Positions 6,884 to 64,000 of a DNA stretch of 64,000 nt are shown piece by piece (the stretch's first letter is position 1; every line of letters begins with the position of its first letter). The notes below the pieces were generated by a model, which was given only the letters and a program-made list of their open reading frames with translations, was not told the DNA's origin and searched no databases. The translations under genes were made by a program, and so were the position numbers. This DNA is from Trichosphaerium sp. ATCC 40318 (taxonomy: Eukaryota > Protista > Tubulinea): positions 90,706 to 154,705 of the forward strand of contig JALMLS010000195.1 of NCBI GenBank assembly GCA_038496445.1, given 5' to 3'.

Positions 6884-9800
6884 ATGCTACGGCTGGTAAC
6901 ACGCCAGTCGCGACCGTGTGCGAGTGCATATAAGCCAAAGCAAGCGCAAATACGCGTACCAAAGCGTTGGGTAGAAATTAACCCAGCGTTAATGCCAGCG
7001 TACCTAAAACGTGGTATTTATAACCGTACGTATAGAAACACGCGATTATATACAAATAAACGCTATACGCGTCCAATATACCTCTAATATACGTAGGTAA
7101 GCATATAAAAGAAATTCACTACCTCCTTTCGCGTGAAGAAGTTTGGCATTCTGAAAAAAAATGTAAAGAGTTCCTAGACTTCGTATGAGCGTCATATACC
7201 TTCAATATACGTCTAATATCATTAAACAAACAGGTTGCTCATAGATATGATGTAAGAGAACCGAAAGATTGGCAGAACATTAGAAAAGTGGATGTTTTAA
7301 AATGTGGAGGGCGTGGATTGCTTGAGTACGTTTTATGTTGCATTGGCTATTTTTTTTTTAAATGTGGCCATGTTTATAGTTAACACCTTGATAGAAAGTA
7401 TCGCTCAGTGGGACGTGCATTGGTTGAATTACGTCCTGAAGAAGGCCATGATGCAAAACTTATTGACAGTATGAAAATTTTCTTATTTTTTTTTGAAAAG
7501 TTTTTCATTTCACACGTGAGTTGTTATCCACATGGACATGATCAAGTTGATCTAAAATTATATGTTATTTTTAACAAAAATGCAACTACTAAAAGCATAC
7601 CTGTAGAGAGCATTAGAGTACCATCAACGGTTTGGGCAGATAAGAAAAATCAACGCGAGTTTTTAGATTATGTGCGCCTCCTCATCACTGAAAATCATTA
7701 ACTATCATTGAAAAAGGTTGGTAAATTGCTACTAGAGAAACCTGTTCCCGAAGGTTGGTATCTTTTATCTGGACAAAGACGCCAAGTTAGCAGTTTTGGT
7801 GGTGACCCTTTCCTAAAGTATGGAACATAAAAAACTCTTATAGCGCTCAGACTTACCTGCTTTTCTCAGGCACCATTCGATGAATTTAGGCTCTGCACTA
7901 ATGGACCTCTATCCAGAGGTCGATTGGCAAGGATGGAAGTTTGGTACATACCGAATACTTTAGCCATCTTTACTTCTTTCGGTAATCAAAACTCTTAACT
8001 TTTACTCCAAGATCAGCTCCCTGTGGATTACTTTGCCAAAGTGTCGAACCAGCGAAGATATTTACTAGAAGAAGTAACACTACTTTTTAGCTATTTATCT
8101 TACTCTATTAATTGAATTACAAGGGTCTTAAAGAGCTAGGTATTGAAAAATACACAGATTGGTATAATATTCGTCAACAAAAACTTCTTGAAATGGAGTT
8201 GCCAGCTCAGCTTCTTGAGTACGTTTTTAACCTACTATAGCAAAGTGGATACTGAACAATGGCTTAACTTATTTTTTGCAGAGTATATGGTAATAATCTT
8301 GCTGAGGCCTTATTAACAATATTCCCTGAAGAGTCTTGGAAAGCTTGGAAAATAGGTATTCCAATTGTTTTCTTTTGTTATTAGTTCAATAACATTACGT
8401 CCTTCTAAGGAGGACTTATTAGCCGCCTTTTACTGTGTCAAACTACACTTTCTTTATATAAGCCTACATCGGACGTTGATTAATTGTGATATATAGATGG
8501 CGAAGTACCTCCAAATTTTTGGGCAAAAAAAGATAACATTGTATCATTTATAAGGTAAATCCTGTGCAGCTTTGTTATACCTAAAAGTATATTAGAGACA
8601 TTCAAGATGAGTTTAAAATAACACCAGATCAATGGCAAGATCAGAGTATTACAGTGAGAGGAGGGTTGAACGCATTACGTGTATACGAACAACACAAAGA
8701 AGCTTTTTTGGATGCTTTGAAAACTCTCAACCCAAGTTTTACCTTTGATACTTCTAAGGTAGAAGCAGCCAACTCTATTAGTAATTTATATAAAGGGTAC
8801 GGTTACTATTGTTACAGAACATCTTATTAACAAACATTTTAGACTTGTTTTTTGGTACACAAAGAGGATTTACCCTAAGAGTGAAGTACAGAAAGATTTC
8901 GTTTTTAAGAATGATAAAGATGATACAGGAGAATTTGAAAAAGAGATAACACTTACTTCGTATATACCTGATAAACGTCTTGGGTTTATTTATTTGGGTA
9001 AGTAATTTTTTTTCGGACATTAAAAAAAAGTGTGACGTGTTGGAGCTCATATTGATCAAGTTTAAAAATAGGTAGAGACGTTTTAAAGAGTTCAACAGGC
9101 ACTTTCCATGACCCAGATGAGTTGTATTATAATTTTCTTGAGAAACAAAGGGAGTACCTTGAAGCCAAAGGCAAGTTGTTTTTATACCACTTTGACATTA
9201 AGTACCTTTTTTAACTGGCTTGTTGTAGGTGTTGATATAGTTTACATCCCATACTGGTGGCGTGCTGATCGTAACACCTTTGAATCTACGCTTCACCAAG
9301 TGAGAGAGGACTTTAACGAGCTCCCAGAACAAGTTCATCCGCTTCTCAAAGGACCAGGTAATTTTTTGTTGTTTTGGAATTAAGGCGAAAGATGATTCTG
9401 ATCTACAATCTGTTGTAACGTTTTTCCAATGTTGGTACAATTATTGGTAGTCCTAAATATCTTAAGGGAGTTACATGATGCCATTGCTACTAAAAACACA
9501 AGAGTTTACAAAAACAGGTGCGGATTACAGTACCTGTAAAACGCTAACAATTTTATTGTTAGATATCTGTCGTTATGGATACTACCCAATACCAATGTTT
9601 GCTTTCTTTACAAAGCGTACATTTGAAGGAAAACATACAGTCAACGGATGGTAATATTACTTTTATTCTGAACTTGATAAATCAGTGAAAACATCTAATT
9701 TTGGATGTTGATTTAGGTATATTTCGGAAAAACTTGACGGCATTAGAGCATTTTGGGATGGTATTAATTTTGTTTCAAAAACAGGTCATATAATACCTGC

Positions 9801-10976
9801 ACCGGATAAAATTCTTAATATGTTCCCACAACACATACCCTTGGATGGAGAACTATGGTACAGTTTTTTTTTAACGTTTTGCCAGTTTGCTATTTTTTTT
9901 GGTCGTATTAAAGCAATGATCACGAAATATTCAATTTTAATTTAGGGCTGGATACGATACAACTGTAGAGCAAATGGTACATAAAATTTATAAGGACAAG
10001 GATTGGACCGGTACGCTGGAGTTTATACTTTTTTTTTACAACTTTTTCTTCTTTTTGACTGCACGTATTCACGCGAACCAGACGCACTTGTTTGGAGTAT
10101 TTATATTGATTAATCTCTTTAGGTATTAAATTTCATATTTTTGATTGTACTGTCATTGGTAAGCGTATGAAAGCGCGATGGGATGCAGCAAAGTACACTT
10201 ATTAATTTTTTTTTTTGTACTTTCGGTTTTACTTACTGTTTAAAGCGCTGTTGTTAAACCCGATCACCCATTTTTTGTACTTATGAAACAAGATATAATC
10301 AATAGTTTTAAAGAAATATATGATGAGTATGCTGTTGTAAAAAAACGAGGCGGTATGCATATAACATGAAACATCACAAAAACTTTTTTGTTCTTCTAAG
10401 GTTTACAAAACTGAACTAACTACTATTTTCCTTTAGGTGAGGGTGTTGTTGTGAGAAAACCTCATTCATTCCAAGCCACTGGAAGAACCAATACAATACA
10501 AAAGTACAAGGTAACATTTCTCACATGAAACATTTTTTTTATTTTGGATAAAAGCCTACACAACTACCAAAGAAAGACCCTGTCACTACCACTCGTTTAC
10601 ACTTTGCCCTTTTAAATTGTTTTGCTAGGGTCATTTGGATCAAGAAGTCCGATTTTTAGAGTTAGTACCAGGACTAAATAAGTTTAAATGCTTGAGGTAC
10701 AAGCCCTTGTGCCGCAATCTTCTATGTTCTCAGTTTTTTCTCACTTCATTTTCTAGGCCAACGGGACACACAAGTACAACACATATCGAAATAGCGTGTA
10801 CACCAGAACAATATGCAAGCCCACCTCCTAAAGGGTCAATACTTACAGTAAACATTGATGATGATGAGCACAAAGGGAGGATTTGGATAAACCCAGTATA
10901 CTCAAGAATTAATTACGAAATGGACTGGAATACAGTAATGGCTGAATGGAAAATGAATATGGAACCTATTCAGTGA
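6884..10976 (+). CDS. Trp-rich repeat protein + degenerate RAP/Vsr-like domain + ATP-dependent DNA ligase (NTase + OB); >20 exons
   Basis: Continuous spliced frame: presequence MLRLVTRQSR, ~4 repeats (NQREFLDY…DWYNI…GG..LL…YPEVDWQGWKF), then IPYWW. Ligase motifs follow: EKLDGIR, DGELW, FHIFD, EGVVVR, QKYK, PPPKGSILTV. Confidence 0.85.
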
Positions 10977-11333
10977 CTTGTGTAAATAAAAACCATACAT
11001 GTAGCCCTGCCCTTTGCCCTTGTTTCTACTACTACAAACATCTACTTGGTACGATTCAGTAAAATGACACTGTATTCCACACTGAGATGCGCGTGTCTTG
11101 TGCTACACAAAAAATCTGTTGTTCCTGTTGTTGTTTCTAGGGACTATTAGATTTCGAAGAAATCACGTGATTTGGATGTTGTTTCGCTGGAATTTGTACA
11201 GGAAACAGCTAATTTTTTAGTCAAACAAAGCTCTAATCAGTTTCGACGTACCGTTGTGTACCACAACCTTATAAATATTTAGGAAACCAAAAACTTTCAG
11301 CCTACTCACACAAGCAGAACAACACGTTAAGAT

Positions 11334-12874
11334 ATGAATGACTCTACAACATTAAACACGTTGCCACTTGACGTTATAGCAATATTTTGTGATTATTTAC
11401 CAATCGACGAGATATTGTCTTTTCGGCTTGCTTCAAGAAGGTGTTGTGAAGGAAGTAACAAATCCTACCTGAGACACATCTTACAACTCAAGAAATACCT
11501 AAAATCAACACTCGATAAACACCACAATGACCCTATCACTATCAAATACAACTGGCTGGTCTCCAAGACGATGAATGATCTTCATGCTTTGAATGAATTG
11601 ATTCAATTGGAACGTGCTCCAAATCCGAAAAGTAATAATACTGTACTTTTTGTCGCTCTTTAAGTCACTAATCAACTTTTTTACAAGGTACAATCAAGAG
11701 ATTTTTAGCATGGTACTCTGAGGAGTCAAAAGTTCCTACCGAAGCGAAAGGATTATTTTGCGAGTTTCAATTGAATACAAAAGACGGTGAGGATGTTGTC
11801 TATGGATTTTGTTGCTATGATGAAGTGTACAACTTCCGACAAGGTAATTTGTCTTTGCTTTTCTTGACGAATTCTGAATTCCGTCTTTGATTTGGTAATC
11901 TCATTCTTGTCAGACGAAAAACAAGTTGGAGTTCAAATGGAACTAACCGTTGGAAAGTCCAAATCGGCACCGCTCGTCAATATATACGCAACATACAATA
12001 AATACTATGATCTAGAATTATCGGAGGCTGTGAGATTGAAGATGGCCGATGAATACCAACAGTTGAATGATGAGCAGTTTTGTATTCAAATTCTCAAAGA
12101 TATTGGTATCGACATGGCTGACCTTGGAACACTTGAAATTGGAATGAGTCGTTATTTAGATGTACCCTATCCAGGCTTCATTTTAAAAGAAGGACAAGTA
12201 CCAGAAGTTCCACGTTTTATTTCAGTGCTGTTAAAAAAGTCATTGGTTCAGTATGTCAGAAAGAGGATAACTGCTTGCTTATTTCAAGTTGTGCTATCAG
12301 AAGACCTGAAGAGTACCAATAGAGGATATCCATTAGTACACGAAGATGAACTCAAAAGGGTACAGCTGATATCCTGTGAATCGTGGTCAATAGGTTGTCA
12401 TGAATACTGCTGCGTACGCTACTTACTTAGTACATTTCTGTGAACTAACATTTCAAAAAGGATCGTGGTTTCCTCGATGTTGTCTATCGCTACAAAGGTC
12501 ACCTTGTCCACTGTATTATTAGTGGTCACTCTTACTATGAAGACGAATTTGCAATCAAACTACACTTTGACACTGTGGCTCTTGGAGAATTACACCAAAA
12601 ATCCGAGGGTTACGAGTCTCTGAATATCTTGTCAACTTCTGATGCACCAGACGAGATTTGGGATTCTGTAAAAGATATCATTCCAAAAGAATCGCCTTCG
12701 CATACTGATAGTATGTTATTCCTAGCGTCATTGGCAATTATCGGATGTCCTAGCACACATATTGGAACGGTTGAAGATGTGGGAAGAAATCATCTGTTGT
12801 ACGAAGATCCTCTACTCAAGTACTTTTTTCATATTGTGACGAAAGGACTTCCAAAAGGATCTATATATCGCTGA
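11334..12874 (+). CDS. F-box protein with unknown C-terminal domain (multi-exon)
   Basis: N-terminal LNTLPLDVIAIFCDYLPIDEILSFRLASRR F-box signature; exons joined by short GT-AG introns. Confidence 0.75.
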
Positions 12875-46804: not shown

Positions 46805-47150
46805 AATTATCCTTTGTAAAAAAAAAATTTGTACACTAAAAAAAAACAACGTTTAATTTTTGTTCTTTGAAGAATGACCATTCTTTGCTTCCATATTAAT
46901 ACACCTATGGTGTTTTACCTTGTAGTGTTTTCCCACACCCTTTTACCGAACGAGAGGAGAACAAACAATGCCTTTATGAAGAATTCTTCTGTTCTCCAAA
47001 CTATGAACTGTTCCTGTGACAAACAAACAAACCTACCTGTCAATTAAAATTGCACTTCTTGACTTATTAACTTTCAAGAAATTTGGGACAAGGATGTCTT
47101 TGTGACAACAGTATGTTTAAGTGAAATAAAAGAAAATAATTAAGTGTCAA

Positions 47151-49261
47151 ATGATACGCCGCGTCTCTGTAGTGAAAGTATGGTACATTAGTAATATATG
47201 GCTATAAAGCGGGGTGGCTATGCACGCGTAAAGAGTGGCCATTGGCTTAAAATATCGAATGTGCGCAGAAGCTTCGATAAAGTGCGTAATTACGTTTGAT
47301 TGTCATTTAAACGACTTCAGCTTCAAGAAAATCTCAGGCTCCATACAAAGAGTGATTGGCATGTAATAGGAGTCGCTGCTCTCAGATCGCAACGCGGTGG
47401 CGCTAGTTTACTTTCGTACGCGTCAGTTGAAGTTTATTCGCTATTTACTTCTATTTTAGCCGTCACAATGGAGCTATCACTCTAGTGTTGAAAAAAATGG
47501 CTTCTGAGCACGTTTGGAATATTAACGATTTTGGTACGATTTCTTACGCTATGTAACATAACTAAACGCGTCCTTGCCGCATATATTAGCGTAAAACCGC
47601 TCTTCAATATTTATATATCAAAACAGTTAATTTAACGCTTAGCTCGCAAACCAAAACACTCTTGGAAGTTCACAGAGAATAAAAGAGCAATGATAATGCA
47701 TGTGCGTGCATTTTTAAAGGTTTCTTGTTTGACACTTCGATAAAAAGGTTGAAAAGGAGTTTAATATTGTAAAATTGGAAGATTGGTATGATATTAGGAA
47801 CGAACAGTTTATAAAAGCGGGAGGAAGTAATTTTTTAAAGACAAATGATCTTAATGGGTCATTACAAAGATTTCTTGAAATTGTTTATCCTGATTTTGAA
47901 TGGAAGAGTTGGATGTTTAGTATGTTGCATGCTATAGAATTTGTACTAATTTGTTTGTTAAGCAAAGGTTCAGAACAGATTTTGGGATATTACCGAGAAT
48001 AAGATCAATTTCATTAGATACGTATGTAGTTTTAGTTGGATGAAAAAAAAAAATAAGAAAATATTGCGAATTTTTTTGAGGCTTACAGACGTTAGGCAGA
48101 GGCTGAATTAGATATAAAAGAGATAAAAGATTGGTATAATGTTACACAAAAAATATTCCGGGCAGTGAAAGGTGGATGGGGTCTTCTCTGTTCAGGATAC
48201 AATTCAAGTATAAAAGATATGATTTCTGACATTTACCCTGATGAAGTATGGCAGCCCTGGCGCTTTAGTACGTGTTATTATACATTAAAGATACTCTACA
48301 CTTACAAAGTGCGTTTAATTTGCTTACACAAATTAGAAAATTGCGGACAAAACACGTGGGACTTATCAAAACCACATTGTAAAGAATACTTATTAGAAAT
48401 TAAAGAAGCGAATAATATTACGACGCCACAAGAGTGGTACCGAGTTGGTTTTGATACAATTGCAAAGAGTGGTGGCCCGGGGTTCTTAAAATTGTGGCCT
48501 AAGGTATTGACATTGATTCATCCAGAGTATAACTGGGATTGGTCAGTATTCACTACAAGAGATAGAAAAGTTATTCAAAGGTAAAATTATAATAATTGTT
48601 TTTTTGTTTGCTGTCAAAAAACTCTATTCGTTTTGTTTGCTCACTCGTTTTTTAAACCTATAGAGCTCTAGTTTCTACGTTACAAAGTGTATTTCAAGGT
48701 TATGAAATACTGGAAGAGTATCATACTAGTATGCATACTGTTCTTATTGGCACACAGACAATAGATATCTTTATTCCAAGTCTTCGTATTGGGTTTGAGT
48801 ACCAAGGAGAGCATCATTATAAAGATATGCTACAAGGATACGGCCCTGCAGCAATGCAACAAGCACGTGATTCGGAAAAATTAGAGCAATGCTTTGAGCA
48901 GGGTACAAAAAACAAAATCGTTCAGTTGGCGGTTTTTTATAATGCTTCTTTCAAGGTATCACGGTTATCCCTATCCCCTTCTCTTGGTCTTCAACAGATG
49001 TAAATAGTATAAAGGCTACAGTACTAAAATATAGGTAAAAGAGTCTAACACGTGACACCACTGACAGTTTTTTTAACAAGGCCTGACTTAAGTAGTATAA
49101 TAAGTGTTGAATCGGAAGCAAAACCAATTGAAATGAACGAATCACCTGCTATTTTGGGTATCCTTTCTCTCTTTAACATGTATGAGTAATTAATGTATAC
49201 AATAGGTATGATGATGCCCGATAACTTGGGTAAAGAACCTCAAAGCAGATCATTTGTTTGA
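47151..49261 (+). CDS. Trp-rich repeat protein + intact RAP/Vsr-like PD-(D/E)XK domain
   Basis: Presequence-like MIRRVSVVKRGGYARV, four repeats (EDWYDI…GG..FL…YPDFEWKSWMF), then IDIFIPSLRIGFEYQGEHHY…RDSEK…IPFSW. Confidence 0.85.
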
Positions 49262-49519
49262 AAAAAATCTTTCTTGCTTAAGATGTGGAGAAGGTTTATT
49301 TTTTGGGTTTTCAAGCCAACCTCTTCATCACATCATGACATGACGCTGTTTTTTTGTACATACCACTATTACTGACATAGTTACTACTGTCATTAATATT
49401 TTTTAAAGCGTCATGTGCATGTGTGAGCGAAGAGTTTGTTTGTTTTTCAAAAATCCCCAAAATGTAGTGTACACAGCTTCGTAATATAGTTTTGTGAATT
49501 CAAATACGTCTGATTGGCT

Positions 49520-61957: not shown

Positions 61958-64000
61958 TCAATTACAAAATAGTATGTACCAATCCAATAATATCTCTGGT
62001 CTTTGATCCGGCGTTCTTCTGTGTTGTACATATTGTCTATGTAATGGCACGTGGTTTTATGGTTGTGAGTGCGGAGACATTATTTTACAATTGACGTGAT
62101 GAGCATCTACAAATACTTGGTCAATGGGATAAACAGCATTTTCGTACTCTCAAAGCGCTTATCACTATTTAGTACAAGCGCCTCCGTAGAGCTATAGCTG
62201 ACATGTGTATCAAGTTGCACATCGGGTTTGTAATAAATTATAGTGCTGAGCAAGCTTTCTACATCTCCTTCCCACCAATATGGAATGGGAACCAAGCAAA
62301 TACCTAACACGTGTCAGCAACCGATTTTACCAGTTGTGCTACCATTTTCTTCGCATTGTCTTGCTTTTTCTAAATCACGTTCTTGGTGAATTGCTGCTGG
62401 GGCAACATGTGGTAATACATCGTGGTAGTGCTGTTCACCTACGATTAATGTGTTTGAGTTTGTAAAGACGCCAAATAGTACCTTGGTATTCTATAGCCAA
62501 GTTGTAAGCTGGTAAAAACAAATCAACAGAAAGTGGTCCACCTTTTGATCTAGTCCCAATACAATGTTCTTCAAGCGCTTCATCATGCGGAAGGGCCACT
62601 TTGATACACTCGATCATTTCACTAAATGTTATGAGTATTCTCTAGTGATTCAAACACAACAAAAGCGTACTATTGTCTTGATTTTTTACCAAATACAGTA
62701 AACCTTGTCCAATCCCAGTTTTCAGAAGGATACAAAACCTTTAATATGCGAGGGAAAGCATCCAAGAACCCTCCACCACCATGATCCTCTAGTTGTGATC
62801 GAGATACACGATACCTAAGTTACGGTAGAACGTTACAGAAAAATTAATAATAGTCTATTACCATTGTGAAGGATGCTCAACTTTTAATGCTTTTTCTATA
62901 TGCTGCAAAAACTCTATTTTATTATACCTGTCATTCCAGTATCCCCAAGAGTTTCGTTTACGACTTGGACTAGAGCTACTTGTAAGTTCACATTATGTAA
63001 AGTGGCACGTACCGAAAATTCCAAATAAATTGGGGATACAAAGCTTCAAGCGTTTTGCCCATAGTACCTCCATACCTGTATTTATGGTCAAAATCGCTTT
63101 ATTAATCATAGCATACTTTTCTAGAATTCCTCGTGCGCCATGGTCAATGAGAGCTAGTCTCGAAATACCATGCCAATCATCGAATACTTTGATGTCCATG
63201 TGTTTCGCTATTTCTTCAAACTGGGCTAGTTGGTTTGCCTTGTTATCCCAGTGACCCGACGCTACAGGTCTAAAATATATCTCAGTAAACGTCAAAGACG
63301 GATTCAATTGTACTTATTAAACACCCAATTGTGAGTAGGGTATATGACCAATAATACGTTAGCAACTGAACCATTGTGTCTAGAAACTAATTAGATGTGT
63401 TGTAACATCAAAATATGCTTGCTTATTTAGTATACTGCCTCCACCAGCCCTACTAAATTCTGCTTTTGACACATTGTGCCAGTCATCTAGTACTTTAATA
63501 TTCAGGTTGTTACCTAGGACATCCAACATTTTTTCTTGTGCTTGTATTACATGACGTCTCGGCTTTTTCCTAACCGAGAAAATTACTAACTTTAAACACA
63601 AAGCTGGCGTGCTTGAACTGTTGTTTAACCCACTTATGAAATGGGTACAGAGTTTTAGTGCTCGTGCTAACGAATCATCGTGCTGCTTCATTAAGGCGCG
63701 GGCGCCATTATCGTACATGTCTTGAAGGGATACAATGTACCAACCATCAAGCTCTTTTATGCGCAAATTACTGGCTACCCCATCAAGACACGTGCGATGA
63801 TTTTCCAAATCTTTCAATGGTCTTTCGGTGCACTCCTTGATAGTACCGACCGTCAATCAAAACAGCGGTATGGCCTGGCCCTTTGCGTACTTGAATTTCC
63901 AAGGAATCCAATCATGCTCTGGGTACATTGCCTGAAGTACACGAGACATTGAGTTATTATACCTGTCATACGAATAAGTTTGTAAAACGTGATTCCATTC
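61958..64000 (-). CDS. Third Trp-rich repeat + RAP/Vsr-like protein (5' end outside the window; two apparent -1 frameshifts)
   Basis: At least five repeats (GHWDNKANQL…DDWHGI…GARGILEKY…YPQFIW), then VDLFLPAYNLAIEYQGEQHY…RDLEK…IPYWW. Frame breaks near 63815 and 63655. Confidence 0.8.

Follow-up and report, generated by a model that had tools for sequence, protein, structure and literature searches.

The stretch of DNA analyzed here, called the window, comprises 64,000 nucleotides of contig JALMLS010000195.1 (positions 90,706 to 154,705 of the forward strand, assembly GCA_038496445.1) from the amoeba Trichosphaerium sp. ATCC 40318. It is eukaryotic, with ~37% G+C and short introns. A spliced gene of ~24 exons occupies positions 6884–10976 of the plus strand and is predicted to encode a protein of ~780 residues, which contains a basic N-terminus, four Trp-rich repeat units, a domain of the Vsr/DUF559/RAP fold with a replaced active site and a C-terminal DNA ligase of the Lig E type. 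One fused gene is the best reading of this locus. What is particular to the predicted protein, a Lig E-type ligase with undescribed accessory domains, is its selectively inactivated nuclease. The exon junctions were placed manually, guided by an uninterrupted frame and GT-AG sites, the spliced protein was analyzed by comparison with retrieved relatives, and the fold models were made on those relatives.

Spliced together, the 23 exons of 7135–10976 give an open frame of 736 codons with no internal stop. The introns are 41–141 nt long, have a GC content of 0.31 as compared with 0.38 in the exons, and follow the GT-AG rule save one. This sole non-GT donor of the gene belongs to the GC-AG intron 9171–9228 (AAAG/GCAAGT); across its junction the sequence aligns without gaps to the family motif G-I-T-L-V-x-I-P-Y-W-W, which confirms the splice. 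Colinearity of the spliced model with its relatives extends over all exon junctions, and the stop codon (10974–10976) is followed after 9 nt by an AATAAA signal at 10985.

The probable first coding exon (6884–7025, plus strand) starts with the ATG at 6884 and encodes the basic N-terminus. A single intron joins it in frame to the 7135 exon, its 3' end being ambiguous since several in-frame joins exist; the best donor candidate is GTACGT at 7026. The first 47 residues are almost devoid of acidic side chains (10 Lys or Arg against one Asp or Glu), and the resemblance to a presequence is only a compositional impression. A motif of ~27 nt (CGTC-ATATACCT-C-AATATACGT) flanks exon 7135–7182 on both sides, at 7066–7095 and 7186–7218, in this poorly resolved 5' region.

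The adenylation (nucleotidyltransferase) domain of the ligase is encoded by 9589–10507 on the plus strand. It carries motif I SEKLDG (9724–9741, with the Lys codon at 9730–9732), motif III DGELW (9844–9946, split by an intron), motif IIIa FHIFD (10131–10145), motif IV EGVVVR (10439–10456) and motif V IQKYK (10496–10510). When the exon with motifs I–III was compared with the PDB, the Lig E structures 4D05 (E 1.6e-8), 8U6X and 6GDR were the best matches and nothing else was notable. The same exon retrieved 38 proteobacterial Lig E loci with 47–63% identity, those of marine gammaproteobacteria showing 57–63%, and spliced residues 477–661 score 139.8 bits against a profile made from 31 of these bacterial sequences. 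Among the 35 columns that are conserved in at least 90% of the fusion family and the reference Lig E sequences, 30 are kept, which is within the range of ordinary members; they include the adenylation Lys, DGELW, F-x-x-F-D, GEG and K-x-K. The presence of conserved motifs at every exon junction indicates that the ligase part of the gene model is right.

The OB-fold domain (10508–10976, plus strand) is colinear with the corresponding domains of bacterial and amoebozoan Lig E and ends in a diverged motif-VI-like tail, INPVYSRI (10887–10910). The last exon alone has no match in Pfam or the PDB and aligns colinearly with the bacterial OB domains. PF14743 is matched weakly by two relatives, P0009 and the last-exon fragment P0003, the latter being the one true relative found in an exhaustive representative search with the 72-residue last exon (78 residues, on contigs without upstream DNA). 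The word “intact” covers motifs I–V only, and the predicted ligase is apparently active.

The domain between the repeats and the ligase is encoded by 8777–9317 of the plus strand, i.e. by the end of exon 8596–8796 and by exons 8843–8997, 9072–9170 and 9229–9357. Its core is degenerate and reads LTSYIPD (8952–8972) and GFIYLGRD (8982–9079), with IPYWW kept at 9246–9260. The family-profile score is 46 bits, as opposed to 130–213 bits in relatives. Across 29 aligned relatives the residues Q, D, E, G, H, D and WW do not vary, and the family motif follows the pattern D ... E-x-x-G-x-x-H ... D-x-x-K. The Trichosphaerium protein has K, T, I, V and L at the positions of the invariant Q, D, E, H and D, so that T, I, V and L stand for the D, E, H and D of the pattern, and it retains G and WW. 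Of 20 highly conserved nuclease columns it retains just 8, all of them structural (L, P, Y, two G, P, WW), a smaller share than in any of the 39 other members compared, among which the next lowest is 12 of 16; none of these 39 has all five invariant polar residues replaced. The loss of polar catalytic residues together with the retention of fold residues gives the domain the look of a pseudo-enzyme rather than of random decay, and its nuclease-dead state, as a predicted pseudo-nuclease, is well founded.

Two paralogs within the window have intact cores, IDIFIPS...GFEYQGEHHY (47100–49300, plus strand) and VDLFLPA...AIEYQGEQHY (62100–64000, minus strand). Both combine Trp-rich repeats with the Vsr-like domain and have no ligase; the second runs past the window end.

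The fold of the domain was read from a relative, P0014, residues 90–315 of which were modeled with AlphaFold2 (AF2) from a 29-sequence alignment, with a predicted local distance difference test score (pLDDT) of 90.4 and a predicted template modeling score (pTM) of 0.81. The closest structures are Vsr endonuclease (1CW0, Z 9.9, 116 residues aligned), the homing endonuclease I-Bth0305I (3R3P, Z 9.2), a RAP protein of the Toxoplasma mitoribosome (9G6K, Z 9.1), a DUF559-like protein (3HRL, Z 8.7) and the RAP module of human FASTKD4 (9GEK, Z 8.3), all of which belong to one superfamily in which the modeled domain cannot be assigned to Vsr or RAP by Z alone. Pfam searches of the metagenomic relative L043 and ten other relatives (E up to 0.1–1) gave no match to Vsr, DUF559, RAP (PF08373), FAST_1, FAST_2 or OPR, and the nuclease-like domain of relatives gave a weak match to DUF2726. 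No Pfam match was obtained with single exons and pieces of the in-window paralogs, nor a PDB sequence match with a paralog nuclease exon, and a homolog search with the nuclease region of P0009 returned two matches only.

The Trp-rich units were located with a profile of the repeat, made from 42 units found in relatives, which matches the model at residues 1–72, 78–159, 156–231 and 234–308. All four are encoded on the plus strand. Unit 1 (7135–7608, E 6.6e-15) is made of exons 7135–7182, 7234–7325 and 7395–7468 and the first nucleotide of 7607–7671; unit 2 (7624–8016, E 2.7e-16) of exons 7607–7671, 7717–7817 and 7870–7943; unit 3 (8023–8354, E 3.2e-12) of exons 8012–8073, 8124–8218 and 8282–8355; and unit 4 (8511–8752, E 1.5e-5), which is the most diverged, of exons 8497–8554 and 8596–8796. 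Units 1–3 (7135–8355) have three exons each with intron phases 0/2/1 in all, and these common phases point to tandem duplication of a three-exon cassette after intron gain.

Relatives contain one to nine such units. In an AF2 model of three units of the relative P0006 (pLDDT 86, pTM 0.44) they form five-helix domains of ~75 residues, and the repeat units are predicted from this model to be independent domains on flexible linkers, like beads on a string rather than a solenoid. The model shows only weak structural likeness (Z 4.4 or less), mostly to helix-turn-helix (HTH) DNA-binding domains of the TetR type. Foldseek, VIA and Atlas searches of the three-repeat model gave no convincing match and no solenoid above Z 4.4, the Atlas structure search finding the family's own Tubulinea cluster alone. 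A Pfam match to DUF4046 is absent in P0006, P0007, P0008, P0010, L043 and the in-window paralogs. An array of the OPR, PPR, HPR or TALE type was also considered and rejected, as the units have ~75 residues and five helices instead of 35–38-residue hairpins, and their packing differs.

The same order of a Vsr-like domain, a short linker and a Lig E ligase was found in 33 database proteins, using L043 and then P0014 as queries. L043 itself, which is counted among them, came from a metagenome scan with the ligase exon; it is an intron-free contig with an open reading frame (ORF) of 864 residues that aligns with model residues 4–653 (E 4e-63), and P0009 aligns over model residues 85–725. Many of the fusion ORFs are marked complete and come from EukProt transcriptomes of Arcella intermedia, Pyxidicula operculata, Amoeba proteus and Copromyxa protea, which belong to Tubulinea (Amoebozoa); look-alikes in some amoebozoans had been anticipated in the original prediction. 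A maximum-likelihood tree that covers 142 ligase domains places 27 of the 28 ligases from fusion proteins, including that of Trichosphaerium, in a single clade with a Shimodaira–Hasegawa-like approximate likelihood ratio (SH-aLRT) support of 98, separate from the Lig E of bacteria and of other eukaryotes. The eukaryotic Lig E proteins P0015 and P0016 are among those that fall outside this clade.

The family has a layout consisting of a basic N-terminus, one to nine five-helix domains and a Vsr/DUF559-type PD-(D/E)xK domain, with a C-terminal Lig E ligase in one subfamily. Basic, acidic-poor N-termini are also found in several full-length relatives, paralog numbers are high in each amoeba, and most members keep an intact Vsr-type active site. 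Two members, P0047 and P0054, mirror the Trichosphaerium gene, having intact nuclease motifs and a degenerate ligase, with CRRYEG in place of SEKLDG in P0047 and no GEG in P0054. In P0013 (a JGI contig, 1061 residues) the ligase is followed by a 3'-5' exonuclease of the Pol I type (PF01612, E 2.4e-11, with a Klenow match).

Some further observations concern regions beyond the ligase. The contig of P0013 ends at the exonuclease, beyond which this protein, like the related P0032, may have a polymerase domain and could then be an organellar ligase-polymerase fusion. In L043 the ligase is followed at 2150–2630 by a segment rich in Cys (CxxC ... CxxxxC), possibly a zinc finger, which has no counterpart in the Trichosphaerium gene. 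In the window, the next downstream gene (11334–11663, plus strand) encodes an F-box-like N-terminus (LPLDVIAIFCDYLPIDEILSFRLASRRC).

The architecture is largely that of the original prediction, in which a single continuous spliced frame was described with about four Trp-rich repeats, a domain of RAP/Vsr type that had lost the putative catalytic Asp and Glu present in the paralogs (ID/VD and FE/IEYQG), and a ligase of the minimal Lig E type rather than of the Lig1/3/4 type, with its motif I Lys at 9730 and motifs III, IIIa, IV and V. The frame is borne out apart from the splice of exon 1, which is uncertain; the domain assignment is right at the level of the fold, and the nuclease loss extends to all five invariant polar residues. 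The claim of a complete ligase holds for motifs I–V and is slightly too strong for the protein as a whole, the motif-VI-like tail being diverged.

In bacteria, Lig E consists of a minimal core of two domains, to which no DNA-binding domains are appended (PMC6144786). The Trichosphaerium ligase shares with the periplasmic bacterial enzymes, such as Psy-Lig from Psychromonas (4D05), Ame-Lig from Alteromonas (6GDR) and 8U6X, the adenylation and OB core and motifs I, III, IIIa, IV and V. Unlike these enzymes it has no signal peptide, ~470 residues precede the ligase, and the region aligned with the bacterial leader is a linker. The OB domain has ACTPEQ where the bacterial enzymes have GSGFSD, and its motif-VI-like tail differs as well.

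Eukaryotic Lig E proteins occur in bdelloid rotifers, Mortierella and other organisms, with Amoebozoa among the holders, and the accessory domains reported for them are PBZ fingers only (PMC10665377). AvLigE and MvLigE are likewise Lig E enzymes of eukaryotes with added modules, although theirs are C- or N-terminal PBZ zinc fingers, while the Trichosphaerium protein carries helical domains rich in Trp and a domain of the Vsr fold. No PBZ-like or Cys/His-rich extension is present in the Trichosphaerium protein, which ends ~30 residues past the OB domain. The kinetoplastid ligases LIG k-alpha and LIG k-beta have been treated as possible Lig E derivatives (PMC10665377). They are minimal (PF01068 and PF14743), mitochondrial and from protists, without a repeat or nuclease fusion, and would be an earlier example of a ligase resembling Lig E that works in mitochondria. 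Fusions would have been missed by a network study of minimal ligases, which covered proteins of 250–370 residues only (PMC8455567). Literature searches, which had incomplete coverage, found no description of a fusion of repeats, a Vsr-like domain and Lig E.

The family domain is similar in fold to Vsr, DUF559 proteins and I-Bth0305I, but the Trichosphaerium protein is without their catalytic residues. The layout also resembles that of RAP proteins (FASTK, the apicomplexan HPR/RAP proteins of the mitoribosome and the Chlamydomonas OPR-RAP proteins), in which an organelle-type leader and helical modules precede a C-proximal Vsr fold. In contrast to RAP proteins, the family has globular units of ~75 residues, a DNA ligase after the domain and catalytic residues that are kept in most members.

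The preferred interpretation, to which about an even chance is given, is that the protein is a DNA nick sealer targeted by its repeats and dead nuclease domain, and a fast-evolving paralog of a Tubulinea family. The ligase, with its adenylation Lys and motifs I–V kept, would seal nicks in DNA, and binding to DNA, or recognition of a site or lesion, would fall to the helical domains and the pseudo-nuclease, a targeting role that would replace the cut-and-seal function presumed for the nuclease-intact paralogs. N-terminal DNA-binding modules would be a sensible addition to an enzyme type that lacks them in bacteria. DNA is favored over RNA as the substrate because of the ligase family, the affinity of the domain to Vsr and homing endonucleases, the intact nuclease motifs of most members and the exonuclease of P0013, all of which point to DNA. 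The N-termini of the Trichosphaerium protein and of several relatives suggest that it is possibly located in mitochondria.

Several observations weigh against this interpretation. The branch of the ligase is 2.86 substitutions per site long as compared with a median of 0.3, i.e. about ten times longer. Two residues before the conserved Pro of the motif-VI-like tail there is an Ile, where nearly all relatives and bacterial Lig E have Lys or Arg; the bacterial counterpart of this tail is G-K-P-R-F-x-x-F-x-R-x-R. Motif VI is needed for self-adenylation of the Chlorella virus ligase. The repeat fold is without a convincing known relative. The choice of DNA over RNA and the location are both inferred, and the locus was read from genomic DNA alone, so that the 9357/9467 splice and the expression of the gene are predictions.

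An alternative, considered unlikely, is that the protein is the sealer half of a split cut-and-seal system, pairing with nuclease-active paralogs or acting in sequence with them at sites chosen by the repeats. The two ligase-free paralogs in the window, with intact nuclease motifs, the intact nuclease and degenerate ligase motifs of P0047 and P0054 and the many paralogs per amoeba all agree with it. These two reverse cases make division of labor among paralogs a live alternative, yet such complementary losses could simply be independent decay in a large family. Decay might also apply to the Trichosphaerium gene itself, as a non-functional paralog in which, after duplication, the nuclease site has gone, the ligase is drifting and the motif-VI-like tail is eroded. 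The very long ligase branch, the lowest retention of conserved nuclease columns and the diverged C-terminal tail would be expected in such a case; however, the frame is open across ~24 exons with all splice sites usable, the loss is selective for catalytic polar residues while fold residues stay, and the ligase columns are as intact as in ordinary members, which makes this explanation rather doubtful. An RNA-directed organellar ligase, whose RAP-like domain and repeats would bind RNA and which would join it in editing, trans-splicing or fragmented rRNA, is quite improbable. It corresponds to the view in the original prediction, where the analogy to OPR- and FASTK-type RNA factors was drawn and where editing, trans-splicing or repair of fragmented molecules at mitochondrial DNA or RNA sites was proposed. 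The fold matches to the Toxoplasma mitoribosome RAP protein and FASTKD4 are nearly equal to that of Vsr, and RAP domains are thought to be dead nuclease folds that serve as binding modules. Neither the analogy nor the RNA roles are upheld, as Pfam RAP, FAST and OPR are unmatched in any relative checked, the repeats are five-helix domains with weak HTH likeness and do not form a solenoid of helical hairpins, the catalytic part belongs to the DNA ligases of the Lig E type and has an OB domain, the nuclease fold is nearest to Vsr and a homing endonuclease, a Vsr-type active site is intact in most members, and one member, P0013, carries an exonuclease of the DNA polymerase type.

The last alternative concerns the linker between the nuclease-like domain and the ligase (9318–9588, plus strand), which contains intron 9358–9466, exon 9467–9517 and intron 9518–9562 in a frame-compatible join. 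The locus could be divided here into two adjacent genes, one for the repeats and pseudo-nuclease that ends at the stop 9381–9383 and one for the ligase that starts at the ATG 9475. Read-through of the 9358 donor reaches that stop after eight codons, an in-frame ATG-ATG is present at 9475, and ligase-less family members end shortly past the same point. On the other hand, the two genes would be only 91 nt apart without an AATAAA or ATTAAA between them, whereas the true 3' end has such a signal, and 9358–9466 resembles the other introns (GC 0.30, T 0.42, each of the three frames interrupted by stops, no poly(A) signal). The equivalent linker in relatives has roughly 10–70 residues, and all 26 other members of the ligase's clade are fused. 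Two genes are therefore very improbable, and a fission in the Trichosphaerium gene alone, possible yet unparsimonious, is held to be no more probable.

For the family as a whole, a broader and also unlikely scenario is a modular nick-and-seal system specified by the repeats, in which the arrays would choose the sites, the Vsr-type domain would nick and Lig E would reseal. Its paralogs would be cutter-only, dual or sealer-only, the Trichosphaerium gene being the first clear sealer-only case, and the role might lie in the maintenance of the mitochondrial genome, possibly as the amoebae's mitochondrial ligase, or be a selfish or defense one.

To our knowledge, all Lig E-type ligases described from eukaryotes are repair enzymes that either stand alone or carry a PBZ tag. 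The conserved fusion of Lig E with a Vsr-type domain and DNA-binding-like helical domains points to an unstudied coupling of DNA incision and sealing in amoebae, and it offers a Trp-rich domain of ~75 residues for which there is neither a convincing structural relative nor a Pfam model. With its ligase kept and its nuclease disabled, the Trichosphaerium gene would be a natural separation-of-function variant for dissecting the modules, and its product is a candidate mitochondrial DNA ligase of Tubulinea amoebae.

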